Origin: Basidiobolus meristosporus CBS 931.73
Lineage: Eukaryota; Fungi; Basidiobolomycota
Length of the DNA stretch: 64,000 bases
Assembly: GCA_002104905.1 (NCBI GenBank)
Contig: MCFE01000126.1
Coordinates: 96,814 to 160,813 of the forward strand
Direction: 5' to 3'
The notes beneath the pieces were generated by a model, which saw only the letters and a program-made list of their open reading frames with translations, had not been told where the DNA came from and ran no database searches. The first letter of the stretch is position 1; each line of letters opens with the position of its first letter. This document shows, piece after piece, positions 40,201-62,623 of this stretch. The position numbers were made by a program, and so were the translations under genes.

Positions 40201-41694
40201 GAGGAGAGTTTTGGCAAATACGGAAGAGTCAACTCGTTCTTGGAGAAACGACTCAGCCTCCTAAGTGAGGTCGACCGCATGGCCAAGTCGCTCCAGCTTA
40301 CGGGGGATCACGGGTATACTTGCGAGACCGCCGGGTACTTCTATCTATATCACATCCTGTCCCGGTGGGAGCCATTCATTGATCGCATGCAGAGTCTTGA
40401 GGGCGATCAGGCACTGGTCCAGACCATTGTGGACGAGTTCCCGTTCACCATGTACTTCGCCAACGCCCCGCAGCCTTTGTTTCCCGAGGCGGCCACTTTT
40501 GAAGAGGCCCTGGAGATTGCCCAAGGGTGCTTCAGACACATCAAGAACCTATTCACACAACTAGAAGAGATCCGTGCTTTCGAGCTGCTTCGTACTGGCT
40601 ATGACCGTTCGAACTACCTGCTCACCAAAGAGGCCAAGATTATCGCCATGACATGCACACATGCGGCGCTGAAGCGTCGGGAGCTAGTCTCGCTCGGATT
40701 CAAGTACGACAACATCGTCATGGAGGAAGCGGCGCAAATCCTGGAGGTGGAGACGTTCATCCCCCTGCTCCTTCAGGACTCAGAAGAGGGGCGGTCGCGG
40801 TTGAAGCGGGTGATCATGATTGGTGATCACAACCAGTTACCGCCGGTGGTCCAAAACGTGGGATTCCAGCAGTACAGCAATATGGAGCAGAGTCTGTTCA
40901 CCAGATTTGTTAGGCTTGGGGTGCCCACGGTGGATCTGGATGCCCAAGGTCGTGCCAGGCCCTCCATCGCCGAGCTGTTCAACTGGAGATACAAGAAGCT
41001 CGGCAACCTCCCCATAGTTGCCCAGAAGCAGGAGTACCAGCTTGCCAACGCCGGCTTCACCTACGACTACCAACTGGTCAACGTCGATGCGTACGAAGGC
41101 TCCGGGGAAACGGAGCCCACCAAGTATTTCTATCAGAACCTGGGCGAGGCCGAGTACGCGGTGGCCATATTCCAGTACATGCGTCTGCTAGGCTACCCTG
41201 CCGAGAAGATCTCCATTCTGACCACCTACAACGGGCAGAAGGCGTTGATCGAGGATGTGTTGAGGGTGAGATGCTCGTGGAACCCCATGTTCGGCAAGCC
41301 AGCCAAGGTCAGCACAGTCGACAAGTACCAGGGCCAACAAAATGACTACGTGATCCTGTCCCTGGTTCGTACGAAATCCGTTGGACACATCAAGGACGTT
41401 CGACGCCTGATTGTGGCGATGTCTCGTGCCCGTCTCGGACTCTACGTCCTCTGCAGAAAATCGCTCTTCGAGAACTGCGAGCCGTTGGCCGAGGTGTTCA
41501 GCAAGTTCGCCCAGCGACCAGACAAGCTCAGCCTGGAAATCAACGAAAAGTGGCCCTCCGCACGCCCGCTGGAGGACACAGGCAAGCCGTTCCTGATCAA
41601 CGACGTTACCCACATGGGAGCGTATGTCCACCAAATGACTCAAGAGCAGGTGGAGCATGCGAAAAAGGCCGACCAAATGGACGAAACACAGTGA
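37275..41694 (+). CDS. AQR: Intron-binding spliceosomal helicase Aquarius (AQR/Cwf11), multi-exon
   Basis: [66 protein letters not shown]. The 5' exons are less certain. Confidence 0.95.
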
Positions 41695-41777
41695 ATTTCC
41701 TATCTTTTACTCAATAAATGTATATATAAGATACCCCGGTTTATATTATATTTTTATGTTCTCTACTATAATACAGC

Positions 41778-42836
41778 TCACTGTTCTATTCCAAATACGC
41801 AATCTCTAGCTTTGTGGCCAGGCTCCAGACAGTGATGACAGTGGTCATGGTCGAAGCGGCACACGTCCATCTTTCCGCATCCCTGGGCATCGTAATTGTG
41901 TGGTCTACAGATTGGCTCCCCGGAGGGTGAAAGACGGACTGGGTAGCGTAAAGGCTTACGGACAAAGTTCTCGGACCGAGCGCGCAAAAACCATGGCTCA
42001 GCCAATGGCGTATGAGGGTCGGCACATCCAAGTAAGAAGGAAGAAAACCACTCGGACGATACACGGCCTGCCATCTTGGCGCTGGCGGTGGGGGTAAGCT
42101 GAGGTAGGGCGAGGGCGAACAAGGCCTCGTTCTTCACAATGATGGTTTCTACTCGAGGTAATAGGAACTTCATCACCTTCACAACGCTTTCCACATCTCT
42201 GTTACCTCCGATATCTACAAACGCCACATTGATCTTGTGCTCCGATATGAGGGTTTGTACCCGCCCAGGATTATGAAGAACGTCCAGACACTCAAATATG
42301 CAGTGTGGAAAGCGTTTTCGAGACTCCACAAACAGGGTAGGTGAGGTTTCTAACCCAACAACCGTACCACAATGCTGAGACAATATGTCTGTGCATATAC
42401 CATATGAGGAGCCGATTTCTAATACATTGTCTGTTTGAAGGATTTGTGCGCGAGCCAGACGACGATACTCGGTAGTGTGCGGGCACAAGATAATGGTTGC
42501 CGGTGAGTTCGGGGCCGCTCTAGGAAATACAGGCGATAGCCGACAAGGATTCACCTGGTAAGTGGAGTCGTCAGAGTGATACCTAACCTGTACTCTATCC
42601 TGAGCCACTTGGTCTTCAGTAGAAGAGATCACGGTAGCGCGTCCAGTGTTCTTATCGGAACGCAACATGACAAAAACTTCGTCGCCTGGGCCGAAGGAAT
42701 AAGCAAGAGGGGAATCCTGGGTAGGGGCAGAGCCTGGATTCGGAGGAGAGAATAAAAATAAACTAGGGATAGGCTCATCTTGCGAAGCAGATGACGAATG
42801 GTCAGCGTTAGGAGCAACAGGCGGAGTAGAAGTCAT
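41778..42836 (-). CDS. SH3/KOW-like + SAM-dependent methyltransferase-like + C-terminal CCCH/CCHC zinc-finger protein
   Basis: Intronless ORF. VLEIGSSYG motif I, GLET motif II, VAFVDIGGNR. C-terminal C-x9-C-x5-C-x3-H then C-x2-C-x4-H-x4-C. First ATG at 42836. Confidence 0.65.
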   Translation of the reverse strand: MTSTPPVAPNADHSSSASQDEPIPSLFLFSPPNPGSAPTQDSPLAYSFGPGDEVFVMLRSDKNTGRATVISSTEDQVAQDRVQVRYHSDDSTYQVNPCRLSPVFPRAAPNSPATIILCPHTTEYRRLARAQILQTDNVLEIGSSYGICTDILSQHCGTVVGLETSPTLFVESRKRFPHCIFECLDVLHNPGRVQTLISEHKINVAFVDIGGNRDVESVVKVMKFLLPRVETIIVKNEALFALALPQLTPTASAKMAGRVSSEWFSSFLLGCADPHTPLAEPWFLRARSENFVRKPLRYPVRLSPSGEPICRPHNYDAQGCGKMDVCRFDHDHCHHCLEPGHKARDCVFGIEQ

Positions 42837-43730
42837 ACTGTATCTATTATTCCAAGTCGGAAAATGCTCCAAAATGAACTATAATATGTAGCAATATTTG
42901 AGCACTTTTTTTTACTAGCGAAAATCACAAATGCTCGAGGTGGTCCAAATTTATAGAAATCTCAAATCTTGTTGCTGTTAATTTGATCATTGTTCCAATC
43001 TTGATGTTCCCTTGTTCAGCAACTAGGATAATTACTAGAGGCACAACTAAATGCTGGTAAAGGAGGTAGGTATAGATTAAAACTATTTATATAAAAGGGG
43101 TCTCCCATATGCAGTATGGTTATATATTCTTGTTGATACTAGACAAGACCAAATACGGGATCTCTAGGATATAACTGTATTGAATCTACTCATTGCTACA
43201 TATACATATCTGGTCTGTAGAGGACTGTAGACTATCTGATTGCCAGGCTTCAGAGATTTTACTGCAGTGCAACTCCCAATATACAGTACTCAATGGCTTA
43301 GACTAGAAATAGCTGACTACCTTTTTCCTGAGAAATTCCTCTGATATGTTTGTGAGCGCCCATATTAGTATGAGGCTATTACACACTACTATAAACATTG
43401 CACCATTGATTGACTCATTTGTTGGGGAGTGATATGTCAGTTGGGAATACAAATAATTAGGCCTTGAAATATCTACAGTTTGCTAGCTTAGCACACAGTA
43501 ATATGCTGAAAGTAGAAATGAGAACCAGGAAGTTAATTGAAGTGCCTAGATGCATACATCTTGAGGATTCATTGGGTGGGGATATAGCACTTATACATCT
43601 CAGTACACTCAGGGAATAGAATGGTAAGAGCTCCTGGAATAAGGTCCCAGGAAGCTGTGTACAAAGATTGGGGTCCTTTGGACTAGATCCAAGATTCTGT
43701 AAATACTGTGCAAGATAAAATTCCAAGTAA

Positions 43731-44050
43731 CCCTCAGAAAAAAAATTAAGAAAAGGCTAGCAGAATACATTCAGAATATCAGCTGAATTCCAACTTTTGC
43801 AGAAGTGACAACTCTCAGTATTTGAGGTACTGGCTTCACAGCAAACAAGCAGACATCCGTTCCAGGGGCAGACTAGGCCAACTAGCATTCATACCAAATT
43901 TGGTAATCAGCTACTCATTACTTCCACCAAAAATTGCAACTGATAATTTGAAGAGAAACGCCAGCGAAATACTATCAGAATACCAGCTGAATACCAGCTG
44001 AATACCAGCTAAAAATCTAACGAATTCCAGCTTTGAGATATTTCATAGGG
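43731..44050. mobile_element. 320-bp CACTA-type MITE with 3-bp TSD TAA
   Basis: TAA-CCCTCAGAAAAA...ATTTCATAGGG-TAA, subterminal AATACCAGC repeats. Homologue of 17797-18116. Confidence 0.8.
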
Positions 44051-44393
44051 TAAATTAACATCAATTCATATTAAAATGCTATATCTAGGATATATGCACC
44101 ACTGGGTGCTAGACCAACTATTTACAACAGTTTACTGAACTCACCTTTTGGCCAACGGATTACTAAGACTAGCACTTCAGGAGGTATTGCCAAAAGTAAA
44201 GAACCAGTCTTTCTCCGGGCCATACAGTGAAAAGACGCTATATTTCGTATTACAACGGGTGACATCTTTCTAGTCCTGGACCATAACGGTTGAAATTTGC
44301 TTGAATCGAATCGAATATTTATTTCTAAAATGATCAGATACGCACGAGTTGATATTCATCCAGTAAATACCAATTTGGAATTAGCCGAGCTAA

Positions 44394-44933
44394 TTACTGG
44401 TGCCAGAGAAATGAGACCCCATTGCCGGTATAGAAGTTGCCGTAGGATGTGGTGTAGGTACCCCCTTGTCCATTGAACTTGTAGTTCCAGTTGCTTGTGT
44501 ATACGCTGCCGTCATTGTTGATGCGCTCCACCACCGCAACGTGGCCAGTCGAGCCGCAGCCCTGGTAGCCTGGCTGGATGACAATGATGGAGGGGACTCG
44601 TGGCTGACTGGACACCACCCACCCATTGACATTGCGAGCACTGGATGGCCAGGTGCGAGCATCGCCCCACCACTGGGTGTGCTGACAGGTCAGCTCGTAG
44701 TAGCGAGCGTCGGCCCAGTCGGTGCACTGGCCATTGTTGAATCGGAACTGGCGAGAGCACGAGGCCAGCACCGAGATGTTGGAGAGCTTGCTTGGTGTGC
44801 CAGACACCTCGGTTTGATTCAGCCGAGCAGAGTTGGAGGGCACGGCTTGAGTCGGTAGAGCCTCGGTTGATGTGGCCAGGAAGGCAGTGGCGGCAGCGAA
44901 TAGATAGGTCAGAGTGGAGGTCAACTTCACCAT
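44394..44933 (-). CDS. Secreted CHAP-domain protein (putative peptidoglycan amidase/endopeptidase), copy 1
   Basis: Hydrophobic signal peptide. NGQCTDWA (catalytic Cys), WWGDARTW, GHVAVVE (catalytic His). 179 aa, intronless. Confidence 0.88.
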   Translation of the reverse strand: MVKLTSTLTYLFAAATAFLATSTEALPTQAVPSNSARLNQTEVSGTPSKLSNISVLASCSRQFRFNNGQCTDWADARYYELTCQHTQWWGDARTWPSSARNVNGWVVSSQPRVPSIIVIQPGYQGCGSTGHVAVVERINNDGSVYTSNWNYKFNGQGGTYTTSYGNFYTGNGVSFLWHQ

Positions 44934-46378
44934 GTTTGTAAGTGTATCAGAATGAATTCTAAGTGATAAGTATCAACTGGGTGCGACTGGGTCTTTTATA
45001 GAATTCGCCTGATGAGTGGTATCGATGCTTCAGCCACTGTGATTGACATTGGGCCACTCCATCCAATAGTATAATGTGTTTGACCAGTTCCAACAAATCA
45101 TAACACGCCAAAGTCATTTAACCGGCTATGGATACATCAATTAAACAGCAACGGAGTCAGCATCCATACCAACTCCCACTTGGGTCCAGGCTAATCTGAA
45201 CATTCGTTCACACTCACATGGAATCAAGCGACCGCATTAAGTAATGACCGTGGTTGCATTCAAAAAGGAAGTGTTGATGTTCTTGGTGTGGTTTCCATAA
45301 AAGTTGAATTGTAATAAGTGGCCCACGCTTCACTCCACTCCATTGATATGCTCAGCTCAATTCGATCTTAGCATTCAATCCAATCGCGAGTCCGGATCTT
45401 AATCAATTGCTGGCATGTATCACAGTGCACTGGCAAATGATGACTCAAGGTAGGGTATTGTAGATAGAGATGCCCTTGTGTGGAGGAGCAACAAGAGGAT
45501 CCAATAGCTATTAGTAGGGTATATCAGGATGAATTCTATATGATATGCATCTATGGAGCGCGTCTTGAAAAGTGATTCGCACACAGGTTGCTATCAGTTT
45601 GACCCCGGCTAACAGTACTGATGTCATTACGTAAGATCATTTAGCCGGCTATAGCCTTAGCTACAACTTATCAACCAAGAAGAAATGGAATTGCTGTTCT
45701 ACCAACTTTCGCTTGGGTATAGGTTTATGTTCCCTCATCTGAATTCTCATTAGAATTTGCATGGAATTACCCATTAAGAAATGACCGTGGTTGCACTTAA
45801 CAAGGAAGTGTCGATGTTCTGGGTACGGTTTCCATATAAGGGGCTTAGTAGTAATCGGCCCACGTTTCGTTCCACGCTACCTCTGAACCAGTAAGCTTAC
45901 CCTTACAACCGATATGTACAGATCATTTCGATCTGGTATTCAATCCAATCGCGAGGCAGGATCTAAATTAATTACTAGCACGTATCACAGTACAATAGCA
46001 AATGATCTTTTAGGGTAGATTATTGAACAATACTCTCATATGGATCCAGAGTCATCGAACAGTAGCAACATGATCCAATACCCTTCCACAATGATTTCAC
46101 ATGTAGAGTTTATGGAAATAGACAAAGCTTACTGGCGTTTGGTTTCAGTAGCTTAATAATTGAAAGCATTTCTATTACTAGTGTTGAGGTTGGATGCTTT
46201 TAGGAAAGTGTATCATGTAGATATGAGGCTCGATCTCACTTAAAAGAAGCCCAGTGCGATTCCTATGATGACTATTTATTACCAAAATAAATATAAAATA
46301 ATCTAGAAGTGGATATTCATCCAGTAAATATCCTATCGAGCTGGTGTAAACTGGGTTTGTTGGCAGGGGCCAAAATAA

Positions 46379-46918
46379 TTATTGGTGCCAGAGGAATGAG
46401 ACACCATTACCAGTATAGAAGTTGCCATAAGAGGTGGTGTAGGTACCCCCTTGTCCATTGAACTTGTAGTTCCAGTTGCTTGTGTATACGCTGCCGTCAT
46501 TGTTGATGCGCTCCACCACCGCAACGTGGCCAGTCGAGCCGCAGCCCTGGTAGCCTGGCTGGATGACAATGATGGAGGGGACTCGTGGTTGACTGGACAC
46601 CACCCACCCATTGACATTGCGAGCACTGGATGGCCAGGTGCGAGCATCACCCCACCACTGGGTGTGCTGGCAGGTCAGCTCGTAGTAGCGAGCGTCGGCC
46701 CAGTCGGTGCACTGGCCATTGTTGAATCGGAACTGGCGAGAGCACGAGGCCAGCACCGAGATGTTGGAGAGCTTGCTTGGTGTGCCAGACACCTCGGTTT
46801 GATTCAACTGAGCTGAGTTGGAGGGCACGGCTTGAGTCGGTAGAGCCTCGGTTGAGGTGGCCAGGAAGGCAGTGGCGGCAACGAATAGATAGGTCAGAGT
46901 GGAGGTCAACTTCACCAT
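46379..46918 (-). CDS. Secreted CHAP-domain protein, copy 2
   Basis: Same motifs; near-identical to copy 1. Confidence 0.88.
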   Translation of the reverse strand: MVKLTSTLTYLFVAATAFLATSTEALPTQAVPSNSAQLNQTEVSGTPSKLSNISVLASCSRQFRFNNGQCTDWADARYYELTCQHTQWWGDARTWPSSARNVNGWVVSSQPRVPSIIVIQPGYQGCGSTGHVAVVERINNDGSVYTSNWNYKFNGQGGTYTTSYGNFYTGNGVSFLWHQ

Positions 46919-48191
46919 GTTTGTAAGTGTATCAGAATGAATTCTAAGTGGTGAGTATCAACCGGGTGCGTACTGGGTCTTATATAGAGTTCACCATTCT
47001 TTTAACCATTAAAATTGTTATCAGCTGGACTCTTGGCACCTGTTCCACTGATATAGCGTGTTTGACCAGCGCCAACAAATCAAAGCACGCACAGGTCTTT
47101 TGGCCGGCTATAGATGCATCAAAAAGTCACTAACCAAACAGTAATAGTGTCAGTGTCCATACTAACTCCCGCTTGGATGATATTCTCTCATCTGGATTTC
47201 CATCTGCATTCAAAAAGAGTGTTGACACCATTTCCATAAAAGTCGATGTGTAATAAGTGGCCGAAGTTTTGTTCCATTTAATCTCTGTACCAGTGCGCTT
47301 ACCCTTCCAACCGCTATTTTCCGTTCATCTCGATCACACTATCCAATGGCAAGTCCAGATCGAAATCAAGTCCTGGCAAATGATTGCTCAAGGCAAAGTA
47401 TTGATGAATATCGGTCTAGAGTCATTGAGGAATAGCTATAGAATCAAATTGCCTCCCAAAATGGTTTCATTGGGTCAGTGAAGCATGGAGTTTGAGCGAA
47501 ACCACGCTAAGCCCGCTGGTGCTCAGTTATCGTAGTTACATTCGTTTATGTATGACCAATCACGTTGCCAAGAGAAAAAAAACTGAAAGGTTTGATGACT
47601 ATAGGAATGTATTCATTGAAAATGTGCGCTTTTACTTCGTTAAAACACTCTAAACAACAAGGAAACTAAAACATGATGATCCTTGATTTATTGAACATCA
47701 CCCACCAATTGATCTTGTGAGAAATTAATAACCTTGATTGTTCTCTTGATGTATTCTGATCTGCTCAAGTTACCAGCTTGTAATGAGCAGAAGTGCGAAG
47801 CTGATAAAACATGAAATCATCGCAATTGTATAAGTATTGCCGTTGGCTTGAAATATGGTTGCTAGGACTGTGATCGAAAGAGAATCTTTACTCTTGACAA
47901 CATATGTGGCTGGGCTCTAGTTATTGCTGTTCCTTCATTCCCAAATTACAAGAGTTAACTGTTTTGAGGATGGAATATTTTCACTCATTGTGGCTTTCAA
48001 TGATTAGAATTAGAGACGATGGCACAATATTTAGAATAGAGAAATTTCTGACATAAAATTTATTGAATTTAATAAGCGAGAAACAAGGCAGCTTCAATTT
48101 CATTATAGTAGCAATAGCATCCACATTTCTAAAGTGAATATCTGTCCGGCAAATATCCAGTTTACCCATTCAACTTATAAGGTCATAGCAT

Positions 48192-48731
48192 TCATTGATG
48201 CCAGAGGAAAGAAACTCCGTTACCGGTATAGAAGTTGCCATAAGAGGTGGTGTAGGTACCCCCTTGTCCATTGAACTTGTAGTTCCAGTTGCTTGTGTAT
48301 ACGCTACCGTCATTGTTGATGCGCTCCACCACCGCAACGTGGCCAGTCGAGCCGCAGCCCTGGTAGCCTGGCTGGATGACAATGATGGAGGGGACTCGTG
48401 GTTGACTGGACACCACCCACCCATTGACATTGCGAGCACTGGATGGCCAGGTGCGAGCATCACCCCACCACTGGGTGTGCTGGCAGGTCAGCTCGTAGTA
48501 GCGAGCGTCGGCCCAGTCGGTGCACTGGCCATTGTTGAATCGGAACTGGCGAGAGCACGAGGCCAGCACCGAGATGTTGGAGAGCTTGCTTGGTGTGCCA
48601 GACACCTCGGTTTGATTCAGCTGAGCAGAGTTGGAGGGCACGGCTTGAGTCGGTAGAGCCTCGGTTGAGGTGGCCAGGAAGGCGGTGGCGGCAACGAATA
48701 GATAGGTCAGAGTGGAGGTCAACTTCACCAT
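48192..48731 (-). CDS. Secreted CHAP-domain protein, copy 3
   Basis: Same motifs; protein identical to copy 2 in the ORF track. Confidence 0.88.
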   Translation of the reverse strand: MVKLTSTLTYLFVAATAFLATSTEALPTQAVPSNSAQLNQTEVSGTPSKLSNISVLASCSRQFRFNNGQCTDWADARYYELTCQHTQWWGDARTWPSSARNVNGWVVSSQPRVPSIIVIQPGYQGCGSTGHVAVVERINNDGSVYTSNWNYKFNGQGGTYTTSYGNFYTGNGVSFLWHQ

Positions 48732-49636
48732 GTTTGTAAGTGTATCAGAATGAATTCTAAGTGATAAGTATCAACTGGGTGCGACTGGGTCTTTTATAGA
48801 GTTGGCCGGATGGGTCTAGCATTGCTTACATACTGCTTTATCCACTGAAATTGTTATTAGATTAACTCAAAGCGTTCCGATCCAATGGTATGGCATGTTT
48901 GACCAGCTATAAAAAATCATTACGAGCAATCCAATTAGCCAGCTATGGATACCGCTACAAGAAATCAAGTAAACTGTAACGGAGCTAGCTACCATGTTAA
49001 CTCCCACTTGGATTTGGCCCAATCTTCTCACATTTGAATTTGCATGGAATCCAGTGACCGCATTAGGAAATGACCGTGGTTACATTAAAAAAGGAAGTAT
49101 CGACGTTCTTGATACGATTTCCAAAAAAGTCAATTTGTAATAAGTGACCCACATTTCGTTCCATTCTCTCTCTGAGTGATTGAGCTTACTCTTACAACCG
49201 ATAAGCCCAGTCTGTTTCGATCTAAGTGTTCAATCCAATCGCAAGTCTGGATCTTAATCAATAGTTGGCATGTGCTACGGTTAAATGGCGAATAATATTT
49301 CAAGGTAGAGTATTACCGAATGACATGCTCTCATATAGCTCTAGAGTCATCGAAGGGGAATACTAAGACCCATGAGCTTCTCAGTATTTCCATTGGTCAA
49401 GAATTATGTGGTAGACTTGTGGAGTTTGTACGAAAAATACACAAAACCCAGATTGTATATTCATAACCATGAGTCTATTGAAAATGCGGGATGCTCAAAT
49501 AAGTCAACTAGTACTGTTTTTAATGATGTTTTTTATTGCCAGAATCAATGTGAAATACTCTAAAAGTGGATATTCATCCAGTAAATATCCTATCGAGCTG
49601 GCCTTGGTTGGCTTTTGTCGGCAGAAACCAAAACAA

Positions 49637-50176
49637 TTACTGATACCAGAGGAAAGAAACCCCATTACCGGTATAGAAGTTGCCATAAGAGGTGGTGTAG
49701 GTACCCCCTTGTCCATTGAACTTGTAGTTCCAGTTGCTTGTGTATACGCTGCCATCATTGTTGATGCGCTCCACCACCGCAACGTGGCCAGTCGAGCCGC
49801 AGCCCTGGTAGCCTGGCTGGATGACAATGATGGAGGGGACTCGTGGCTGACTGGACACCACCCACCCATTGATATTGCGAGCACTGGATGGCCAGGTGCG
49901 CGCATCGCCCCACCACTGGGTGTGCTGGCAGGTCAGCTCGTAGTAGCGAGCGTCGGCCCAGTCGGTGCACTGGCCATTGTTGAATCGGAACTGGCGAGAG
50001 CACGAGGCCAGCACCGAGATGTTGGAGAGCTTGCTTGGTGTGCCAGACACCTCGGTTTGATTCAGCTGAGCAGAGTTGGAGGGCACGGCTTGAGTCGGTA
50101 GAGCCTCGGTTGAGGTCGCCAGGAAGGCAGTGGCGGCAGCGAATAGATAGGTCAGAGTGGAGGTCAACTTCACCAT
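49637..50176 (-). CDS. Secreted CHAP-domain protein, copy 4
   Basis: Same motifs; ends FLWYQ. Confidence 0.88.
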   Translation of the reverse strand: MVKLTSTLTYLFAAATAFLATSTEALPTQAVPSNSAQLNQTEVSGTPSKLSNISVLASCSRQFRFNNGQCTDWADARYYELTCQHTQWWGDARTWPSSARNINGWVVSSQPRVPSIIVIQPGYQGCGSTGHVAVVERINNDGSVYTSNWNYKFNGQGGTYTTSYGNFYTGNGVSFLWYQ

Positions 50177-51235
50177 GTTTGTAAGTGTATCAGAATGAAT
50201 TCTAAGTGATGAGTATCAACCGGGTGCGTATTGGGTCTTATATAGAACTTGCCAGAAGCGCCTAGTATCACTGACCCACTGCTTTAGCCACTGGTATTGG
50301 AGTGAGCACCATCAGACCCAATGGTATAATGAGTGTGACTAATTTCAACAGGTGATGGCATACTCAAGTCGTATATCGTGGTATGTATTCAAGTAAAAGA
50401 TTGCAATGGGTTATCACTGAAGTAGCGGTTGCTAGGCTTGGATGTGGGCTATTGTTTCCTCATATGGAATCTCTGTCGCTTTTACATGGAATCAAGTGAC
50501 CGCATTAAGGAATGGTTGTCGTTACATTCAAAAAGGAAGTACCAATGTTCTTGGTACGATTTCCATAAAAGTCGATTTTTAATAAGTGCATTCCACTCCG
50601 TCTCTGTACTATTATTCCTACCCTTACAACCGATATGTCCAGTCTATTTCGATCTCAGTATTGGATTCAATTGCGAGGCCGAATCATAATCAAAATATTG
50701 GCACGTAACATGGTTTATTCACCAATGAGGACCTAGAATAGAGTATTATTAAATAAGATCTTCCAGTATGGTTCTAGAGTCTTTCAGGGGTAAATGACAG
50801 ATCCAGAAGCCGAAATAGATAAGGTTAATCTATATTATTTGGATGGGACATACCAAAAGCTTATGAGTACTTAATTTCAGTAGCTCGAAAGCTGTAAAGT
50901 ATAACTAATTAGATCATAAATTTTTTGAAAGATTAGATTGGCCAAAAATTGGACAGTAGTAAGTGGTGTTCTATTGCTTACGCATAAACTTATTTCAATC
51001 AATGTGAGTTGAAGTTGAGGAGCGTAGAATAGGTTGACTGCCACTAATAAATGTATGTATTTTAAGTTGGATGAAGCGAGCTTACTGAGTTGGATGCCCT
51101 GAATGTAAGTTTTATTTGCGAGGTGCTCTCTTTATTGCCAGAATAAACATGAAATGATCGAAAAGGGGATATTTACCCAGTAAATATTCTATTGAGCTAA
51201 TCTAAGTGGCTTTTCATCAGAAGCAGTCATGACAT

Positions 51236-51775
51236 TCATTGGTGCCAGAGGAATGAGACCCCATTACCAGTATAGAAGTTGCCATAAGAGGTGGTGTAGG
51301 TACCCCCTTGTCCATTGAACTTGTAGTTCCAGTTGCTTGTGTATACGCTGCCATCATTGTTGATGCGCTCCACCACCGCAACGTGGCCAGTCGAGCCGCA
51401 GCCCTGGTAGCCTGGCTGGATGACAATGATGGAGGGGACTCGTGGTTGACTGGACACCACCCACCCATTGACATTGCGAGCACTGGATGGCCAGGTGCGA
51501 GCATCGCCCCACCACTGGGTGTGCTGGCAGGTCAGCTCGTAGTAGCGAGCGTCGGCCCAGTCGGTGCACTGGCCATTGTTGAATCGGAACTGGCGAGAGC
51601 ACGAGGCCAGCACCGAGATGTTGGAGAGCTTGCTTGATGTGCCAGATACTTCGGTTTGATTCAACTGAGCTGAGTTGGAGGGCACAACTTGAGTCGGTAG
51701 AGCCTCGGTTGAGGTGGCCAGGAAGGCAGTGGCGGCAGCGAATAGATAGGTCAGAGTGGAGGTCAATTTCACCAT
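51236..51775 (-). CDS. Secreted CHAP-domain protein, copy 5
   Basis: Same motifs; upstream flank unrelated to the other four copies. Confidence 0.88.
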   Translation of the reverse strand: MVKLTSTLTYLFAAATAFLATSTEALPTQVVPSNSAQLNQTEVSGTSSKLSNISVLASCSRQFRFNNGQCTDWADARYYELTCQHTQWWGDARTWPSSARNVNGWVVSSQPRVPSIIVIQPGYQGCGSTGHVAVVERINNDGSVYTSNWNYKFNGQGGTYTTSYGNFYTGNGVSFLWHQ

Positions 51776-53492
51776 TTTTTGAATCTCAGAGATTGTTGGA
51801 TGCTGATTTTGAGGTGATAAAAGCTTTTATAACCTGGAGTGGAATGCATCTCTCTCTGACCGACTTTAGCCGTTTTAAATACAGATGTCCAATGGCACCG
51901 TACAGATACATAGCGGGCCGAGTCATTATACCTCTAGTAATACTTCTAACTAATATGGTAGGGCTCGAGGTTTACTGCGAGTAAGTTTAATATACTAAAT
52001 CTGGAGATGTATCCTTGCGATTAACTCAACAAATCAGAATTACTATGCTCACAGCTTATAACTGATAATTCGTGCTACAAACAATGTCCTAAAGATCAAC
52101 AAGTTACATAATAGCAGTCAGCATGCATTATGGTGTTTTTTCTATTAATGTACTTAAGACCCATGGTAGCTTGCTAGTATTCTTTTCTTTTCCCGATCTG
52201 GAATACTATGCAGTATTGTACTTCGCTTCCAACGAATGACAATATAAGCCCCGCAGCTGTTTTAAAGATTCGAATTGCCATCTCGGATTTTCCACAAAAT
52301 GAATCCCAAAAACACTAGATTCCGATTTAACAGTAAGACAAGACTAAAAGCTAACTTCGCTGAATTGAGCATATATCTCTAAAGCGGAAGGTCCCGGGTT
52401 CCCTTAGAAACTTTCTACTTACATTTGTAGTGATCATTACGAGGGATACGTTACTTTCGAGATCTCGCAGCCAGAATGGCTTCGATTTGCTTGTAATGTT
52501 AGAGTACTTTCGCTTACCACTATTATTATCATAAACCCTTTGTGAACTCCATTTCATTATATACTTACTTTGTGTTGTGAGTGCTGACGCCAGAAGAAAG
52601 AGCCCTCGTTGCCAGTGCTACTAATTACAAGAGCCAATCTATTCAGATAACTCCATCGTTTCCGACAGTAAGGAATGCTCCACGAGAATTGTATTCTATG
52701 GTACAGATATCCTCTTCCATCACTATTATTAACTACCTTGCTTTAGTTACTTTATTTCGCTCAAGATATTGCTTGATATTTATCACACGTTGTTTGGCTA
52801 AACTGATATGGAAAGCGAGTGGATGCCAAATATGGAAAGATTAATAATAGCCACGCCTCACATAATTGGAGGTTTGTACCACATTCTTTCAATCCTCAAT
52901 AATCCAATCACCGATTAGAATCTTGGCACGGTCCTGGCAAATCGATTTTCAGAAGAAAGCTCGTACAGGCCACTGCTTTAGAGCTTACAGGATCCTGGAT
53001 TGGTTGCAAAGTCAAGTTGCTACTACCGATGCTATCAAGATACTACCGGCCAGAGTTTGCGCAGATACTTCCAATTCTGTGTATGGATAGTTACTGTCCA
53101 ACCAATCGTACAAAACGCTACCTTTCCATTGCACACCAACCGTTGTTGTTCTATTGTGTATGCAAACTTGCTGGCAACAGAGGGGCTATTTGTGTTGAAG
53201 TGACTGGAGGATATGGCATCTTCCTCATTGAATATACTCTACGCTCCCAAGTAGCAGAAAGCATATTAGCAGGATAGTACACAGAAGTACCCAATCATCG
53301 CGAACAGTTCACTAATTACTTTTTATATATGAATTGGTTCAGCTCCACTACAATTGCATTACTTTCCATAAGTACCTATCCAATTGATCATTTCCCAACC
53401 AAAACGTCATAATCACGGGTTTATATCAAAGGAACGCACCGTAAATACCCTTTGAACCTAAGAGGTCAAGAGGAGCAGCTGCTTTACGATAG

Positions 53493-55111
53493 TCATTTCT
53501 CCGGAGTACCGAACTTCTCTTTGGTGATAGTATAGGTGAGGAGCATTTCACCTTCGGATCGGAGCTTCATGGTGTGGGTTCCGACCTCCCATTCAGTGAA
53601 ATTGCCATTCACGATGGTACTGTCAAAACCGCCATTCCAGGTATCGTCGTCGATAAAGTTCAAATAAAGTGAGAAGGGTGGCGAGACGTCATCAGCCAAG
53701 TCAGTGAACACCGTTGCCTTTGGTGATTTGATGAAGTTCACGTCTTGTCCCGCCCTGATGGATTGATATCTGGGCTTCTCAACCGACCAGATGTACTGTC
53801 CATTCAGCACGATGTCGCCCCAAGCCTCCGCGGTGTCATCGCTCGCGGGCTCCGCGGGATCGATTAGTTTTAAAGAGACGATCTTGAAAGTCCACTTGTA
53901 GCCACGGCGAACGGGATGGCAGGCCTTGATGGTGTATTTGGTGGTCTCGCTGACGGCCGCAAGGTTTCCATTAGCGATGCTACGAAGGGTATAGGAAATG
54001 GGGACGTAGGTTTCCAAAGTAGATTCCTGACTAAAGAAGGAGTTAAGGTTTCCGTCCCGAATCAGATTGATGGCAGCCTCTCGGTTACCACCGATAACAG
54101 CGACGCTAATTTTCGATTCGCTAAGAAGCTTCTGATGTTTGATATCGAGATTGCTGTCAACTCCCAGCTTCAGACCATTGTAGGAGGCCTGGATGGTTGC
54201 GCGTATATCCGAAGAGCTAGCAGAAGAGGTTACCGAGTAAAGCAATACACGCCCGTAGCTAATGCTGGACACAAAGATTGGAAGGTTGTCGGGTCCAAGT
54301 CGACCAAAGCGTATTTGTTCCTTCAAATCCTGCATGGTGAATTGGCTGTTAAAGAAGTCAGCAGGGGTTTTAGGCATTGCGACATCCACGGTGAATGCTT
54401 TCTCGACGAAGTATGCGGCAATGGTATTTTCGGTGTAGTTGCGTTGAGTGTCTAGGGCGGTCTTTGCTTGGAATGCCAAGTACTTGGCGCCAAAACCCAG
54501 GTTTAATGCAGCTGATTCGGCAGAGTTGACCTCGACTGTTTTGTAATGAATATTAGCTCCGGGCCTGTATCCACCGGACTTGGCATGAGACACTAAACCC
54601 GCAATTGCATCACGGACAGCTCTGCGCAAGAAGTTAATTATCAAAAGGCAGAGATGGCAATATACAGGCTTACTTACCCAGAGTCAGGTTTGCAGATGGA
54701 AGATGAGCTCTTTCCATTCAAGAAGTCCACCGTAATCTTCTGTTCGTTGCGATCCCCAATGGGAAGAGGCTTGAATCCTCCTACGCCATCCACATATCCT
54801 TTGCCTTGAAGGAGAGCACCTAACCAGAAGGCATCTGATCCAGTACCAAAAGTTACCAGCTCCTTGGGGGTGTCTGTCAATGTGATGTCCTGGACCGAAC
54901 ATTCAAGCTGAACGCTTCCCATGGAGGCCTCTTGACTTTTAACATCCCCTTTGATGGTGTCCGATGATTGAACGTTAGCAAACTTATCCCAGTCTGGCAA
55001 GGTGGCAAAGTAGTCATTGATTTGGCTACGGTCCGAAGGCAAATCGACGGGAGCAGCGTTCACCTTCAAAGCAGTCAGAAAAAGAAGAGAGATGGCAGAG
55101 AACTTTAACAT
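53493..55111 (-). CDS. Secreted thiol-activated/cholesterol-dependent cytolysin-like (CDC-like) protein, 2 exons (55111-54678, 54621-53493), 520 aa
   Basis: Signal peptide. FWLGALLQG, AYFVEKAFTV, PIFVSSISYGRVLLY, VIGG and VPISYTLR are CDC pore-forming core motifs. A 56-nt intron GTAAGT...TTAAC...CAG (54677-54622) joins the two track ORFs in frame (PDSG|AVRDAI). Confidence 0.85.
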
Positions 55112-56305: not shown

Positions 56306-58310
56306 CCCTATGAAAAATAATTTGGTCCTGCAGGTGGATCCTATCTGGTTCAGCCATCAGGATCCTGTTTGGAGACCATCATAATATCAGCAGCTTGGGA
56401 TTAGTGACCCGCTTAACAATTTTATGACAGGATCACAATGGCATTTGGCTAATTTTACTGCCAAATAAAGTCAAAAAACTTGATGGGGTTTATTGGTGCT
56501 GCATCAATAGTTGCGTGGCATTGTTGCAGTCTTCAAGCCTCTGATGGCATTATTACGGCAGTATTACAGCCTACAGCTAGTTCTGTATAATGCTACCATA
56601 CCAATTTACCAAATGGTATTTCCTTTTTCTACCTCCCCTTGTGCAACTCATATATTCCACTGTAGATTCACCCCACTTTATTTGCTTACCCACTACCACC
56701 TTGGGTATTCCACATATAGTTTGAATCAACAAAACCATGGCCTCCTGCTTACTAACCTCTACAAACACACACACCTGCCACAATTGACATACTCCTATCA
56801 CCTCAACTTTATGGCTTTTTAGTGTGATACTTACAAAGTTGCCATATACCTTGTACTGCCAGTAACATATATATCTTGCAAACATATGCTTGGATGCCAC
56901 CACTTCTGCCATAAATACCTCCTGAATATCTGCAAAGAGCTTTTTGGTATTTAGTCAATATATTCCTTCTCCCTGCTGGATTCTAGTCCCCCTTATGGGT
57001 GCCCTCTGGCTCTTGTTTGTATGAATTCCATATTTAATGGTGTAGAAGTTGGCTTGCAGCCAAGAGAAGCCCAGCATACATTGGTAGGGCTTTCCTAATA
57101 AAAGTTAGTTGCTTGTTGCACCCAACCCAACTTTGCATTACTTAACTGATTGCCCACACATTGGGGCTGCTTAGCTTCTTAATTCCATAGGTATAGGTGT
57201 CTACACATGTACATCAGTCCTCAGTATTTTCCAACTCTTCCTAGCTGTCCTCCATGTACCAACTCATCACATCCATCATGGACTTAAAGGTATTATATTC
57301 TTGATGAGATTGGGATATGGTAGTACCTGCAACTTGACTTGTCTTCCTATCTTCTCACACATCTGCTCCATAGGAAACTCCCAAAAGGTGAAGCAAGGGC
57401 CAATATTCTCCACACACCAAGCAAGATAGAGTAAAGAATGGATACAGTAGCAACAGAGATCTACACCTTCAGCTTGATGTTTGTAGTATAGCTGCTCAAA
57501 TCCTGTTACAAACTCCTTGCATAACAGCTGTAGATGTGTCAAGTTGGCATTAGTGATCCGCTTCTGGATAAATATTCCTACAATGTCCACATATGACCCC
57601 CAATGCTTCCAATGTACTCTTGGTAGGAATGGCTCAGAATGCTACCTGAATAAATAAATATCCAGCTCATCCAGTCTTTGCATTTGTATTGTTGCATATG
57701 CATATGAGTATTGATTGGAGCCTGTGAGAAGTACTTACATGAGCAGATGCTCTGTAACATCTTGCCAATTCTTTCAAATTCCTCTGGTATATCAATGGGC
57801 TCATTTAGCTTGAAATGCCCCATTTAAAACTTAATCATCAGCATAGGGATATTGTTGAAAAGCAAATGCATGCTCTCAGTGGAAAGCTTTTGCTCCAACA
57901 GATACCCTCTATCTTAAGTATCTCTGGTTTCTGATTGATTCCATATTCTGGCTGATGGCTTATAGCTTGCCCACTTTGCTGCAATTGCATGCTGACTTCC
58001 GTACAATCTCTCTGTGAGAAGATGATGTTCTTAGTGTTGGTGTTTGGGTAATAATAATTTGTGTGATTCACGGGGTAATCCTCTGGATCTCATACATCCA
58101 ACAGCAAAACTGTCCATTGTACCCAGAAAAGCCAGCTATTTTGCCAATGGCTGGGATATCTCCAATGCAGATAATGATATGCACTTTGACATGACAACCA
58201 TTTACTGTTATCCTGCTGGAAAGCATACAAAATTCATCCAGCAATGGATACAGGTAGCTATCCAGGTTGGATGGTGATTTAAGCCCAGATACCAATAAGA
58301 CTGCCATCAG
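56306..58310 (-). mobile_element. Degenerate CACTA/CMC transposon, transposase 3' part and terminus
   Basis: GLKSPSNLDSYLYPLLDEF (Transposase_21-like) and HSLLYLAWCVENIGPCFTFWEFPMEQ (DUF4218-like). Terminus CCCTATGAAAAA at 56306. Confidence 0.7.
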
Positions 58311-58688: not shown

Positions 58689-58700
58689 TTAGGGTTAGGG
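58689..58700 (+). repeat. Telomeric repeat seed (TTAGGG)2
   Basis: TTAGGGTTAGGG directly abutting the SINE-like element A tail. Confidence 0.7.
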
Positions 58701-59220
58701 GAGGAAAGTCACCAAGTGGTGAAATCTTTATTTACTTATGACAAGTATCTAAAGAAGCCAAGTTAATCTGAAGTTATTCCTAGAAAGCTAGGTCTGAGAG
58801 ATATCTTCCTAGTAAGCCAGGTCTAAAAGTTGAGAAGCTGAGTGGTACTATATTTCCTAGTTAGCTAGGTCTGAGAGAGGTTTCCTGGAAAGCCAGGCCT
58901 GAGAAGTGAGAATCTGAATATATCTGAGCTAAGTTATACTGGTTTGCGGTAGCTGAATTGTGGCCGGAATGGCCAGTAGACTGGGGGAACTGAGATGAGT
59001 TTCTGGGCGATCACTGGCCAAATTTACTAGGCAAATCTGGCCAATTAGCATTTCAAGGATTTCAGCCAATCAGAGCCCTTACTTTGCCCGATGGTTGATC
59101 AAGCCATCTCCCAATGAGCACACATCAATTTATAAATCAAATTTTGTTGGATCCAGGATTTGAACCCACAACCATGGGTATGGAAGGGTTAGGGATAACC
59201 ACAAGGCTAAGTGTTCTTGG
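58701..59220 (-). mobile_element. 520-bp tRNA-headed SINE-like element, copy A
   Basis: Minus strand: A-box-like TAGCCTTGTGG (59209-59199) and B-box GGTTCAAATCC (59166-59156), 32 nt apart. The 3' tail is shared with the LINE 3' UTR. Flanked by TTAGGG on both sides. Confidence 0.75.
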
Positions 59221-59249
59221 TTAGGGGAGGGAAAGTCACCACTTAGGGG

Positions 59250-59769
59250 GAGGAAAGTCACCAAGTGGTGAAATCTTTATTTACTTATGACAAGTATCTA
59301 AAGAAGCCAAGTTAATCTGAAGTTATTCCTAGAAAGCTAGGTCTGAGAGATATCTTCCTGGTAAGTCAGGTCTGAGAGTTGAGAAGCTGAGTGGTACTAT
59401 ATTTCCTAGTTAGCTAGGTCTGAGAGAGGTTTCCTGGAAAGCCAGGCCTGAGAAGTGAGAATCTGAATATATCTGAGCTAAGTTATACTGGTTTGCGGTA
59501 GCTGAATTGTGGCCGGAATGGCCAGTAGACTGGGGGAACTGAGAGGAATTTCTGGGCGATCACTAGCCAAATTTACTAGGCAAATCTGGCCAATTAGCAT
59601 TTCAAGGATTTCAGCCAATCAGAGCCTTTACTTTGCCCGATGGTTGATCAAGCCATCTCCCAATGAGCACACATCAATTTATTAATCAAATTTTGCTGGA
59701 TCCAGGATTTGAACCCACAACCATGGGTATGGAAGGGTTAGGGATAACCACAAGGCTAAGTGTTCTTGG
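59250..59769 (-). mobile_element. 520-bp tRNA-headed SINE-like element, copy B
   Basis: About 10 substitutions versus copy A by eye; same boxes and tail; flanked by TTAGGG. Confidence 0.75.
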
Positions 59770-59811
59770 TTAGGGTTAGGGTTAGGGTTAGGGTTAGGGT
59801 TAGGGTTAGGG
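59770..59811 (+). repeat. Telomeric repeat tract (TTAGGG)7
   Basis: Seven perfect TTAGGG units. Confidence 0.97.
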
Positions 59812-59869: not shown

Positions 59870-62623
59870 CTACTGTTGTAGCTTTGATACAAGAGTGTGT
59901 AGCTGAGGGGAATTTGTAGGTAAGTTAATAAGAAGTGATGATAGCTCTTCAGTGCTCAAGACACTGTTCAGTGGGAAGGGGGGTAGCAAGAGAGGTAAGA
60001 ATGACTTGTGAACAACATTAATGAGGGGAATGTGATAAGGATTGATATTCATCATAAAGGGAGTGTGCTGCTGCAGATATTGCTGCCAAAGGTCTGTCAA
60101 GTACTTCAGGTAGGCCAGCTTGGGTTTTTCTGACTGCAGAATATAGTGAGCAAACTTCTTGACTTCAGGATCTCCAAGTATAGTTCTCCAGCAGGAGTCA
60201 GGTGTTGTGTGGTGTGTTCTCTTCCAGGCCTTAATCAGTGGGTTGTTGCAGTTGTGAAGTCTGAGGTATAATCTGGTTCTAAGGTAGAGAAGTCTGATCT
60301 TATAGGGCATAAACCCAAAAGCACCAAGAATAGCATGTCTGTAGGGGCATTCAGGCAAATGAGGCACCAAGGAGGTAATGCACCATACTGCAAACTTGTC
60401 AAGCTTAGTGCAGTCTCTAGAAGTAAGAGAGAGAAGTGGTAAGCCAAATTCCAGGACAGGGAAGACAAACTGCTTGAGTAGAAGGAGGCAGCTGGGAGCT
60501 GAAGTTGTAGGAGGAGTAACAGCCAGTAGCTTGTGGAGTGCCTGTCTTGCCAGGATAATTCTCTTCTTCAGATGTGCTCCAGAGTCTAGTCCAGTAGGAA
60601 GGAAAGGAAAGCCAAGATATGTAGCAGAAACCTGAGCAGGTAGAGTGGAGTTCTCCAAGTTGATAGGAGAGCCCAAAGGTACTGTCTTTGCAATGGAGAG
60701 CTGGAGATTATTCTTCTGCAGATACTGCTGGATGGTCTGGGAGTCTTGTTGCACATTGGAGGAGGATATTCTGATGTCATCAGCAAAGAGAGTAACCAGG
60801 CAGTCAGCTGAGAGTCTTGGGAAATCATTCAGGAAGATGGCAAACAGTATAGGACCAAGCACAGAGCCTTGAACCACTCCATTAGGAACTGAGAACACAG
60901 CTGATTGCTCACTTGGGTGCAGAATTCTTGCTTGTGGATCCAGAAACAGAGACCTGACAAGGAGGGTGAGAGAGGTACTGGAGAAGCATTGCAACTTGGA
61001 CCAAAGCAGATTTCTGTCAACTGAATCAAAGGCCTTAGTAATATCAAACAGAACAGAGGGATACTTGCACTGGAGAGAGTGATCTTGGCTAAGTATGACT
61101 GCATATTCCAAGGAGAGGCCAGGAACAAAGCCAAACTGTGCAGGATGAAACTTGAGGGAGTCAGAGTAGAGCTCCTGAGCAAGCAGAAGCTCAAACACCT
61201 TTCTGCAGGTGGGCAGCAGAGATATTGGCCTGTAGGAGCTAGGATCCAGGTGCTTTCCTTTACCCTTGTACAGTGGCAGAACATTTGCAAAGGACCATTC
61301 CTCAGGAGTAGAAAGCTGGGCTGAGTATTGCTGAAACAGTTGAAGCAGAAGTGCAGACATGGCCTTGGTACTAGTCTTCAGAAGCTCATAAGAGATTGTG
61401 TCCACACCTGGAGCAGTAGAGTTGGGAAGCCTCTTGAGCACATTATGGATTCTCCTTTGATCAAGTGCAAGTGGGATGGGCAGAGTCTTGAAGTCAGGAT
61501 GAAAGCCAGGAGTTGAGTACTGCTTTGTAGAGAAGAAGATGTTAGCCAGCTGTTCTGTTGAAGGTAACTTCCTGGAAGAGGGCCTCATTGCCCTGTAGAG
61601 TCTTGATACTGTTCTTGTTATAGAGTTGGAAGATTGCAGAGGCAAAGAACTCATAATATGATCCCAGAGCTGAGTATGCAGAGTGTGGTGAATTGCCTTG
61701 GAGTGGTGTATTGCTGTCAGGAGGAGTTTCTCTGTTTTTGGGTTAGGGAAACTCAGGTAGCTTTGTTGCAGGGCTGAAACAATGGATTCCCATTTTCTTG
61801 AGGTAACAGCAGTAGTCTTGCATGGCAGTGAGAGGGAGGCAGACACCAGAATCAGATGCTTCACAAAGAGCCAGGCATAGTTGAGATCATCTGGCAGAGA
61901 AAGTAGCAAACTGGCAAGCTTCAAGTAGTTCCCAAAGTCTTTCTTCTGATTCTTGGTAGCTTTGTGGGTGAGCACAGTAAGTTTTGGCAGCTTCTTCTTC
62001 ACAACTGGTTGCATAGAAAGGGACCAGGCTGGATGGTCAGAGGCTCTCAAGGATCCTAGCTCAGCTCCAGAGAATTGCTTAACTTCATTCACAAAGTAGA
62101 GGGCAGCAGCAGAAGGGCAGATCCAGTCAACACATCTTTTCTCAGATTGAGCACCTAGTGCTAGCAGGTGGCTTTCTCTCAGGAAGTTCAGTAGGAATGT
62201 AGACCTTGGCTTCATTCTTGCAGTCAGAGTAGTCTTGTTCTCAGGATGGGGAATGTTGAGATCTCCAAGCAAGATAACAGGTGTTGATATAGATTGTTGG
62301 TATTGCTGAACCTTCTGGCATATAACTTGCACTTCTTGAAGGGCAAGACTTGGAGGCAGATAGCAGAGCACCAGACTGATAGTTGGCAACTGGAGAGCAG
62401 CACAGTAAGGGGAGTAAAGAGGAACACAGAGCTGAGGAGTATTGATGGTAGAAGAGATGAAGCAGATAGAGGAGGTATTCTTTGTTCTAGGAGTAGAAAA
62501 GCAATATAGATTAGTCAAAAGTATAGAGGGTAGCTGGACATCAATCAAACACAGGAGGGAAAATCTTGAAAGAAGTCTCTCTAGAGTTGGTCTTGATGGC
62601 TGTATGCTGTTGCAGTTAAGCAA
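59870..62623 (-). CDS. LINE ORF2: AP-endonuclease + reverse transcriptase, 917 codons, uninterrupted
   Basis: APE motifs LNCN, YLPP, GDLN, VDWI, SDH. RT motifs APGVD, YRPISLL, QFGF, DITKAFDSVD, GVVQGSVLGP, LFADD, YLG. No ATG at the start. Confidence 0.92.
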   Translation of the reverse strand: MLNCNSIQPSRPTLERLLSRFSLLCLIDVQLPSILLTNLYCFSTPRTKNTSSICFISSTINTPQLCVPLYSPYCAALQLPTISLVLCYLPPSLALQEVQVICQKVQQYQQSISTPVILLGDLNIPHPENKTTLTARMKPRSTFLLNFLRESHLLALGAQSEKRCVDWICPSAAALYFVNEVKQFSGAELGSLRASDHPAWSLSMQPVVKKKLPKLTVLTHKATKNQKKDFGNYLKLASLLLSLPDDLNYAWLFVKHLILVSASLSLPCKTTAVTSRKWESIVSALQQSYLSFPNPKTEKLLLTAIHHSKAIHHTLHTQLWDHIMSSLPLQSSNSITRTVSRLYRAMRPSSRKLPSTEQLANIFFSTKQYSTPGFHPDFKTLPIPLALDQRRIHNVLKRLPNSTAPGVDTISYELLKTSTKAMSALLLQLFQQYSAQLSTPEEWSFANVLPLYKGKGKHLDPSSYRPISLLPTCRKVFELLLAQELYSDSLKFHPAQFGFVPGLSLEYAVILSQDHSLQCKYPSVLFDITKAFDSVDRNLLWSKLQCFSSTSLTLLVRSLFLDPQARILHPSEQSAVFSVPNGVVQGSVLGPILFAIFLNDFPRLSADCLVTLFADDIRISSSNVQQDSQTIQQYLQKNNLQLSIAKTVPLGSPINLENSTLPAQVSATYLGFPFLPTGLDSGAHLKKRIILARQALHKLLAVTPPTTSAPSCLLLLKQFVFPVLEFGLPLLSLTSRDCTKLDKFAVWCITSLVPHLPECPYRHAILGAFGFMPYKIRLLYLRTRLYLRLHNCNNPLIKAWKRTHHTTPDSCWRTILGDPEVKKFAHYILQSEKPKLAYLKYLTDLWQQYLQQHTPFMMNINPYHIPLINVVHKSFLPLLLPPFPLNSVLSTEELSSLLINLPTNSPQLHTLVSKLQQ

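Follow-up and report, generated by a model that had tools for sequence, protein, structure and literature searches.

An amplified CHAP hydrolase array and a CDC-like pore former, probably chance neighbours, in a Basidiobolus meristosporus subtelomere

INTRODUCTION

Eukaryotes with horizontally acquired peptidoglycan hydrolases include ticks and mites, with their domesticated amidase effectors, Trichomonas, with its NlpC/P60 enzymes, and possibly Saprolegnia, with its CHAP proteins; a classical cooperation between pore former and wall hydrolase is that in which the membrane attack complex (MAC) of complement lets lysozyme reach the peptidoglycan of Gram-negative bacteria. The locus described here invites comparison with both: in the fungus Basidiobolus meristosporus CBS 931.73, five CHAP genes stand next to a gene for a protein resembling the cholesterol-dependent cytolysins (CDCs), within a 64,000-bp stretch (the window) taken from contig MCFE01000126.1, which is 160,813 bp long. 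Like the tick, mite and Trichomonas enzymes, the CHAP proteins are bacterial papain-like wall hydrolases with a eukaryotic signal peptide (read by eye in CHAP), selected and duplicated in a host that lives with bacteria. The Basidiobolus family differs from these in its domain, CHAP, in its nearest relatives, which are found in Ktedonobacteria, and in its scale, with more than 45 genes in arrays of five to at least nine; its activity is predicted only.

The pore former finds its closest described counterparts among the CDC-like proteins (CDCLs), with which it shares the CDC D1-D3 fold, the F/Y-F/Y-Xn-YGR motif, the glycine pair and a C-terminal binding domain that is divergent and not of the cholesterol type (Evans et al. 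2020, PMC7527733; Abrahamsen et al. 2024, PMC11169675). Proven antibacterial CDCLs have long and short components, are activated by protease and are accompanied by an immunity lipoprotein, whereas the window has one 520-aa gene with no short partner nearby. Compared with the E. anophelis CDCL, the window protein is nearer in sequence to the true CDCs and ends in a predicted C2-like domain. Classical CDCs (perfringolysin O, pneumolysin, vaginolysin) resemble it in the Thiol_cytolysin domain, which scores above threshold, and in predicted fold, but domain 4 of the window protein cannot be aligned with theirs and has no undecapeptide. Perforin and the complement MAC offer a further likeness, a pore module of the MACPF/CDC superfold followed by a beta-sandwich, predicted to be C2-like in the window CDCL; unlike perforin, the window protein has neither sequence similarity to C2 domains nor an EGF linker, and its Ca2+ binding is putative. 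As for cooperation with a wall hydrolase, the parallel between MAC with lysozyme and CDCL with CHAP is one of analogy only.

Basidiobolus is known for heavy gene uptake from bacteria, discussed mostly in relation to secondary metabolism (PMC7466969). The present locus adds two protein-based candidates for dealing with neighbouring cells, an arrayed CHAP family and a CDC-like pore former. The CDCL genes are in the literature already, three putative CDCLs having been listed for B. meristosporus CBS 931.73 (Evans et al. 2020, PMC7527733); what is new is how large the CHAP family is and that it is arrayed, together with the predicted C2-like domain. Our literature search found no paper naming both Basidiobolus and CHAP, and two papers on horizontal gene transfer (HGT) in Basidiobolus and early fungi mention neither CHAP nor a cytolysin. 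A preliminary description of this DNA proposed a dedicated two-step weapon set, with hydrolases opening the wall and the cytolysin then perforating the membrane. The reading presented here is that two bacteria-derived, secreted-looking families were gained and expanded independently and that they are, probably, neighbours by chance in one subtelomere.

A FIVE-GENE ARRAY IN A LARGE CHAP FAMILY

The five CHAP genes, none of which has an intron, and the CDCL gene, which has one, are arranged head to tail, all on the minus strand (Table 1), with the CDCL on the higher-coordinate side and 1717 bp between its stop codon and the ATG of CHAP copy 5 (CHAP5). Both protein types begin with an n-h-c signal-peptide pattern, MVK...AFLATSTEA/LP and MLK...TALKVNA/AP, read by eye. 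The adjacency, common orientation and secreted look of these genes, as the preliminary description had them, are thus borne out by open reading frames (ORFs), Pfam matches and the N-termini.

All five copies match Pfam CHAP (PF05257, peptidase C51) at 57.1-57.3 bits, against a cut-off of 26. In an alignment with the solved CHAP structure 2k3a, residues C70 and H131 fall on C57 and H109, and across the family the catalytic Cys is kept in 97 of 102 members and the His in 102 of 103; at His+17 the family has Asn or Asp where 2k3a has Glu, and at His+19 it has Asn. On this alignment the catalytic pair of Cys and His is intact, the proteins belong by domain match to the CHAP/peptidase C51 group, and peptidoglycan amidase/endopeptidase activity is predicted for them.

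At the protein level the copies are 98-99% identical, two of them being the same, and their coding DNA is 93-97% identical, while the spacers are 75-84% identical or cannot be aligned. Coding differences are nearly all synonymous at a pairwise synonymous divergence (dS) of 0.06-0.15, with a ratio of nonsynonymous to synonymous divergence (dN/dS) of 0-0.13; because of this pattern, all five copies are judged to be held by purifying selection, and the amplification is judged not to be brand new.

An exhaustive homologue search over 1.8 billion representatives returned best matches that are all from Basidiobolus, followed by Ktedonobacteria and unnamed metagenome proteins, which are 50-62% identical across the domain. 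Among named bacteria, Thermogemmatispora, Tengunoibacter and Dictyobacter, all Ktedonobacteria, come closest. In a maximum likelihood tree with 46 fungal rows, 45 from Basidiobolus and one from Entomophthora muscae, 46 of 46 fall in a single clade (SH-aLRT 97), and the fungal family of more than 45 genes is accordingly read, from the tree, as the product of a single Ktedonobacteria-like transfer. Many pairs of B. meristosporus and B. ranarum genes appear in the same tree, so that most CHAP duplication would predate those two species. The five window copies make up a clade by themselves, sister to a gene elsewhere on their contig, at a distance of 50-plus kb; by its phylogeny the window array is a species-specific five-fold tandem amplification of a single-domain, secreted-looking CHAP.

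The one sequence from outside Basidiobolus, a 314-aa protein of the fly pathogen Entomophthora muscae (KAJ9049577.1, P0121 in our set), sits inside the fungal clade on a long branch, which hints at either a transfer before the split of Basidiobolus and Entomophthorales or a second transfer.

Tandem arrays are the usual arrangement of Basidiobolus CHAP genes, the others comprising a pair on the contig of the window, a run of at least nine genes on MCFE01000226.1 and one of six or seven on MCFE01000090.1. The last of these (L007 4491-6496 and 8220-17011) has no CDCL and adjoins copies, 93-96% identical, of the telomere-associated long interspersed nuclear element (LINE) found in the window; because of these LINE copies it would also be subtelomeric. 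In the two-gene array (L005 1-10547, record ~31-42 kb), CHAP genes of 181 and 169 aa stand directly beside a gene of 8462 aa, taken from the neighbouring locus tag to be JGI (Joint Genome Institute) model 349800, a model listed as an HGT-derived nonribosomal peptide synthetase (NRPS) (PMC7466969). The CHAP pair beside the NRPS is a second juxtaposition of CHAP with another bacteria-derived function.

An array of this kind may raise the dose of an extracellular enzyme cutting stem peptides or amide bonds of bacterial peptidoglycan, and such enzymes could lyse or digest bacteria round the hyphae in gut contents, dung and soil, whether for competition, for food or for both. That they are not weapons at all, and instead process peptidoglycan fragments, be it as nutrients or so as to weaken the host's immune sensing of bacterial wall pieces, with the array providing bulk output, strikes us as unlikely. 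Secreted enzymes that serve digestion or depend on dosage are typically encoded by very large arrayed families such as this one, which counts more than 45 genes across two species, and one of the arrays lies beside a GH18 chitinase and a sugar transporter; sequence, however, cannot separate the lysis of live cells from the digestion of debris, and a small single-domain CHAP without wall-binding modules can do either. If the enzymes do lyse bacteria, they would help explain the hold of Basidiobolus in herptile guts and would be a source of small lytic enzymes.

A CDC-LIKE PORE FORMER WITH A PREDICTED C2-LIKE DOMAIN

Exon 2 of the neighbouring gene matches Pfam Thiol_cytolysin (PF01289) at 83.9 bits, against a cut-off of 25, and the predicted fold of the protein retrieves vaginolysin, perfringolysin O and pneumolysin at Foldseek E ~1e-23 and the E. 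anophelis CDCL at E ~1e-14. The CDCL motif is present as YF...SYGR and the glycine pair as IGGN, and G258, R259, G312 and G313 are invariant in the CDCL alignment. Alignments to every solved CDC end at residue 365-376; beyond this point nothing of CDC domain 4 is found in the translation, neither a Thiol_cytolysin_C match nor an undecapeptide-like string. Because a CDC-type domain 4 is missing, the protein is classed on sequence as a CDCL and not as a cholesterol-dependent cytolysin sensu stricto, so that of the earlier term "cytolysin" the D1-D3 module stands, by Pfam match and fold, and the cholesterol type falls away. The two-component arrangement of antibacterial CDCLs is likewise not seen, with one CDCL match only in the window.

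Over the part compared, the window CDCL is 100% identical to ORX97792.1 (public model P0050, labelled "Perfringolysin"). That model, of 510 aa, begins MFFEALVNAAP and has no signal peptide, while the ORF from the ATG at 55111 yields MLKFSAISLLFLTALKVNA followed by AP, as in the paralogues P0051-P0053, and the gene would encode 520 aa. Because this ATG gives a signal-peptide-like start matching those paralogues, the 5' end of ORX97792.1 looks mis-annotated. B. meristosporus has the paralogues P0051 (91%) and P0054, B. ranarum has P0052 and P0053, and public accessions of paralogues include ORX65373 and ORX80278. Between P0050 and P0051, exon 2 has a dS of 0.93 and an omega of 0.05, the signature, as far as these rates go, of an old duplication after which both copies stayed under constraint.

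C-terminal domains are unrelated among CDCL homologues, and profile searches with the last 145 aa of the window protein gave no Pfam or PDB match. Modelled alone, from an 8-sequence alignment, this domain reaches a pLDDT (predicted local distance difference test score) of 80, and the model has VIA Z scores of 10.5 to the C2 domain 3w56 and of 9.6 and 8.6 to the perforin C2 domain. Its Foldseek rows are all C2 domains through rank 39 and its Atlas rows are mostly C2-domain families; the fold search with this domain returned C2 domains and not CDC D4. The model thus predicts a C2-like domain where a CDC would have its cholesterol-binding domain 4. Acidic clusters (D24/D31/D32 and D94-D96/D103) lie in the loops between strands 1-2 and 6-7 of the predicted domain and are partly invariant in Deinococcus relatives; on the model, they would sit where the calcium-binding loops of a C2 domain would be. 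The CDCL may then bind phospholipid in a Ca2+-dependent manner through its C2-like domain, assemble into a ring and insert a large beta-barrel pore.

Such a pore former could, in the manner of perforin, be aimed at eukaryotic cells (gut epithelium, protists, nematodes or insects) and have no relation to CHAP enzymes acting on bacteria. We treat this account as a tentative one, on the unlikely side but worth keeping in view, and consider a eukaryotic target of the pore former at least as likely as a bacterial one. By phmmer, D1-D3 is much closer to the true CDCs, which attack eukaryotic cells (vaginolysin, E 1e-18), than to the CDCL-long of E. anophelis, whose chains 8g33 and 6xd4 give E ~0.005, the CDCL-short chain 8g32 matching at E 1.2e-08; the order of modules, a pore module and then a predicted C2-like domain, is that of perforin, and the gene is a single component without a short partner. 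Against a eukaryotic target speak the missing cholesterol-recognition domain and the company of bacterial relatives in free-living lineages such as Deinococcota, Gemmatimonadota and Bacteroidota; moreover, those non-CDC relatives that alone have been tested act on bacteria and leave eukaryotic cells unharmed (PMC11169675), and the C2 assignment is a structural prediction only. Should the pore former hit animal cells, the fungus, which occasionally causes disease in humans, would have in it a candidate virulence factor.

The donor of the CDCL was sought in a scan of 185,579 prokaryotic genomes, which yielded 80 loci. Only Deinococcus proteins were weakly similar in the C-terminal domain (E 1.5e-5 and 0.002). 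In a FastTree phylogeny, which carries long-branch warnings, the Basidiobolus CDCL clade (support 100) has a long stem and stands beside Deinococcus aquatilis and Armatimonas-type proteins. CHAP being nearest to Ktedonobacteria and the CDCL tree showing no pointer to them, the two families are taken, on their phylogenies, to have arrived by separate bacterial transfers. The bacterial origin claimed for both in the preliminary description is upheld by the two trees, as two gifts rather than one.

The only bacterial relatives aligning nearly end to end (residues 21-504) are the Deinococcus CDCLs of D. yunweiensis, on plasmid pDYP1, and of D. rufus (L008, L009). One Deinococcus CDCL gene is therefore plasmid-borne.

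A PAIRING SEEN AT ONE LOCUS

The first telomeric unit, TTAGGGTTAGGG at 58689, lies 3578 bp from the CDCL ATG. Two SINE-like (short interspersed nuclear element) copies follow, at 58695-59226 and 59243-59775 and 98% identical to each other, then (TTAGGG)7 at 59768-59811, with the LINE ORF beyond. Copies of this LINE, 98-99% identical, lie directly under the terminal (CCCTAA)n of contig MCFE01001143.1. The subtelomeric position of the CHAP-CDCL locus is well supported, resting on the TTAGGG units together with LINE copies found under a true terminal telomere elsewhere, and both the location and the distance of about 3.6 kb to the first telomeric repeat agree with what had been described.

The pairing of CHAP with CDCL has so far one example. 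At four other fungal CDCL loci, among them the whole 15.6-kb chromosome-end contig MCFE01001143.1 and two B. ranarum loci, no CHAP was found in the examined flanks; the B. ranarum CDCLs neighbour ATP-synt_E, and the paralogue P0051 has a true terminal telomere 6.6 kb away, in each case without CHAP. The other three CHAP arrays were without a CDCL. In 1.15 Mb of sequence from the 80 bacterial CDCL loci, tblastn and a profile hidden Markov model gave 0 CHAP matches; more than one CDCL match was present at 10 of the 80, the second being mostly a separate CDCL gene nearby. The adjacency therefore occurs only once among all loci compared (5 fungal and 80 bacterial CDCL loci and 4 CHAP arrays), and the conserved linkage that marks a functional gene cluster is absent from them.

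On MCFE01001143.1 (L001 1-8463), (CCCTAA)n occupies positions 1-223, followed by a LINE stack and then by P0051, with an orientation relative to the telomere that matches the window. The repeat bounding the window array (the 17817-17920 family) is represented by a piece 500 bp downstream of the P0051 gene.

The histories of duplication differ as well, the ages lying about ten-fold apart (dS 0.06-0.15 among CHAP copies vs 0.93 between the CDCL paralogues). CHAP copies 1-4 have in common a 75-bp promoter containing a TATA element. CHAP5, the copy nearest to the CDCL, lacks it: homology stops 4 nt upstream of its ATG, and the upstream sequence at 51776-51900 is different and TATA-like. No 8-mer is shared between CHAP and CDCL promoters, a result that counts as weak negative evidence. 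Each gene has its own promoter, with no shared control element or conserved cluster seen. With different donors, different duplication ages, no common promoter 8-mer and an adjacency found nowhere else examined, the proposed dedicated weapon set is not supported; linkage in related genomes and putative donors, suggested at the outset as a check, was looked for at the 4 fungal CDCL, 3 CHAP-array and 80 bacterial loci and was not there.

The adjacency is best explained by the accumulation of both families in subtelomeres. Two of three CDCL genes and two of the four examined CHAP arrays are subtelomeric, and this shared enrichment at chromosome ends is enough for one coincidence, though the sample is small.

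A binary antibacterial module would work differently. In one order, CHAP thins the Gram-positive wall and the pore former then perforates the cytoplasmic membrane; in the reverse order, on Gram-negative cells, the pore opens the outer membrane for the 15-kDa hydrolase. We regard such a module as improbable. It would accord with the adjacency, co-orientation and secreted look of the genes, with purifying selection on CHAP and CDCL alike, and with the life of B. meristosporus amid dense gut bacteria (PMC7466969). Bacteroidota CDCLs kill bacteria through large outer-membrane pores passing proteins up to ~125 kDa (PMC11169675), which offers a parallel to the reverse order. MAC with lysozyme offers another. 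For lipid binding, a C2-like domain would depend on phospholipid being exposed, and on Gram-positives a wall hydrolase could bring this about. What speaks against a module is the solitary linkage, the difference in donors and duplication ages, the want of a shared promoter motif together with the deviant promoter of CHAP5, of all copies the one next to the CDCL, and the fact that, unlike the proven antibacterial CDCLs, this one has no CDCL-short partner or evidence of protease activation. Synergy between CHAP and CDCL is mechanistically conceivable in either order and finds no comparative support. A bolder version sees a binary bacteriolytic system like that of complement and lysozyme, assembled from two separate bacterial gifts, a perforin-style pore former and a high-dosage CHAP, each potentiating the other against gut bacteria; we give it very little credence. 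The two-step island is not an idea to be carried forward on present evidence.

Several points nonetheless weigh against independent acquisition and chance neighbourhood. Were genes scattered at random over a large genome, a member of a family as rare as this one, with three copies, would be unlikely to land only 1.7 kb from a CHAP array, and the argument from subtelomeric enrichment draws on few loci. Both products look secreted, their genes are co-oriented, and the related Bacteroidota CDCLs do kill bacteria (PMC11169675). The CDCL donor is not fixed by a long-branched FastTree, even if nothing in that tree points to Ktedonobacteria. The C2 assignment comes from a structure predicted from an 8-sequence alignment, with no match at the sequence level, and enzymatic activity, pore formation and C2-like lipid binding are, all three, conjectural.

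FLANKING SEQUENCES AND FEATURE COORDINATES

Both sides of the island had been described as CACTA elements, and the two sides fare differently. On the right, an ORF at 58068-58307 matches Transposase_21/tnp2 at E 1.6e-5 and 24.6 bits, below the cut-off of 28.6, and this sub-threshold match makes a degraded CACTA-type element at 56306-58310 plausible; an inverted-repeat scan and a motif search found no CACTA terminal inverted repeats above chance. On the left, where an element had been placed at 43731-44050, neither CACTA termini nor a transposase were found at 43729-44054, and the sequence is a dispersed repeat only, of a family with a related piece in MCFE01001143.1 (L001) at 8974-9076.

Table 1. 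Coordinates of the CHAP-CDCL locus and of its flanking features in the window
Feature	Position	Strand	Basis and remarks
CHAP copy 1	44394..44933	-	179-aa ORF, intron-less; Pfam CHAP E 2.6e-15; signal-peptide-like N-terminus
CHAP copy 2	46379..46918	-	179-aa ORF and Pfam CHAP; protein identical to that of copy 3
CHAP copy 3	48192..48731	-	179-aa ORF and Pfam CHAP
CHAP copy 4	49637..50176	-	179-aa ORF and Pfam CHAP
CHAP copy 5	51236..51775	-	179-aa ORF and Pfam CHAP; promoter unlike copies 1-4
CDCL exon 2	53493..54621	-	Remaining D1-D3 pore-forming module and 145-aa predicted C2-like C-terminal domain
CDCL intron	54622..54677	-	56 nt, spliceosomal, GTAAGT...CAG, phase 2; agrees with public protein P0050
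CDCL exon 1	54678..55111	-	Signal-peptide-like start MLKFSAISLLFLTALKVNA; agrees with N-termini of paralogues P0051-P0053
Unclassified dispersed repeat	43729..44054	.	Centromere-side boundary of array; 76% copy at 17795-18120
Decayed ORFs, possible degraded CACTA-type transposon	56306..58310	-	Sub-threshold tnp2/Transposase_21 match in 58068-58307
First telomeric units, two SINE-like copies and (TTAGGG)7	58689..59811	+	Sequence search
Telomere-associated LINE ORF (endonuclease and reverse transcriptase)	59870..62623	-	Pfam; 98-99% identity to MCFE01001143.1 copies

Toward the interior, the housekeeping genes for galactokinase, GMPPB, CLASP and Aquarius occupy the window from 24 to 42 kb. The GC content steps sharply from 37-38% in positions 1-24000, which are rich in repeats and decayed elements, to 48-54% in 24001-42000, the part with the housekeeping genes; over the rest of the window, from 42 kb on, it is 40-47%.

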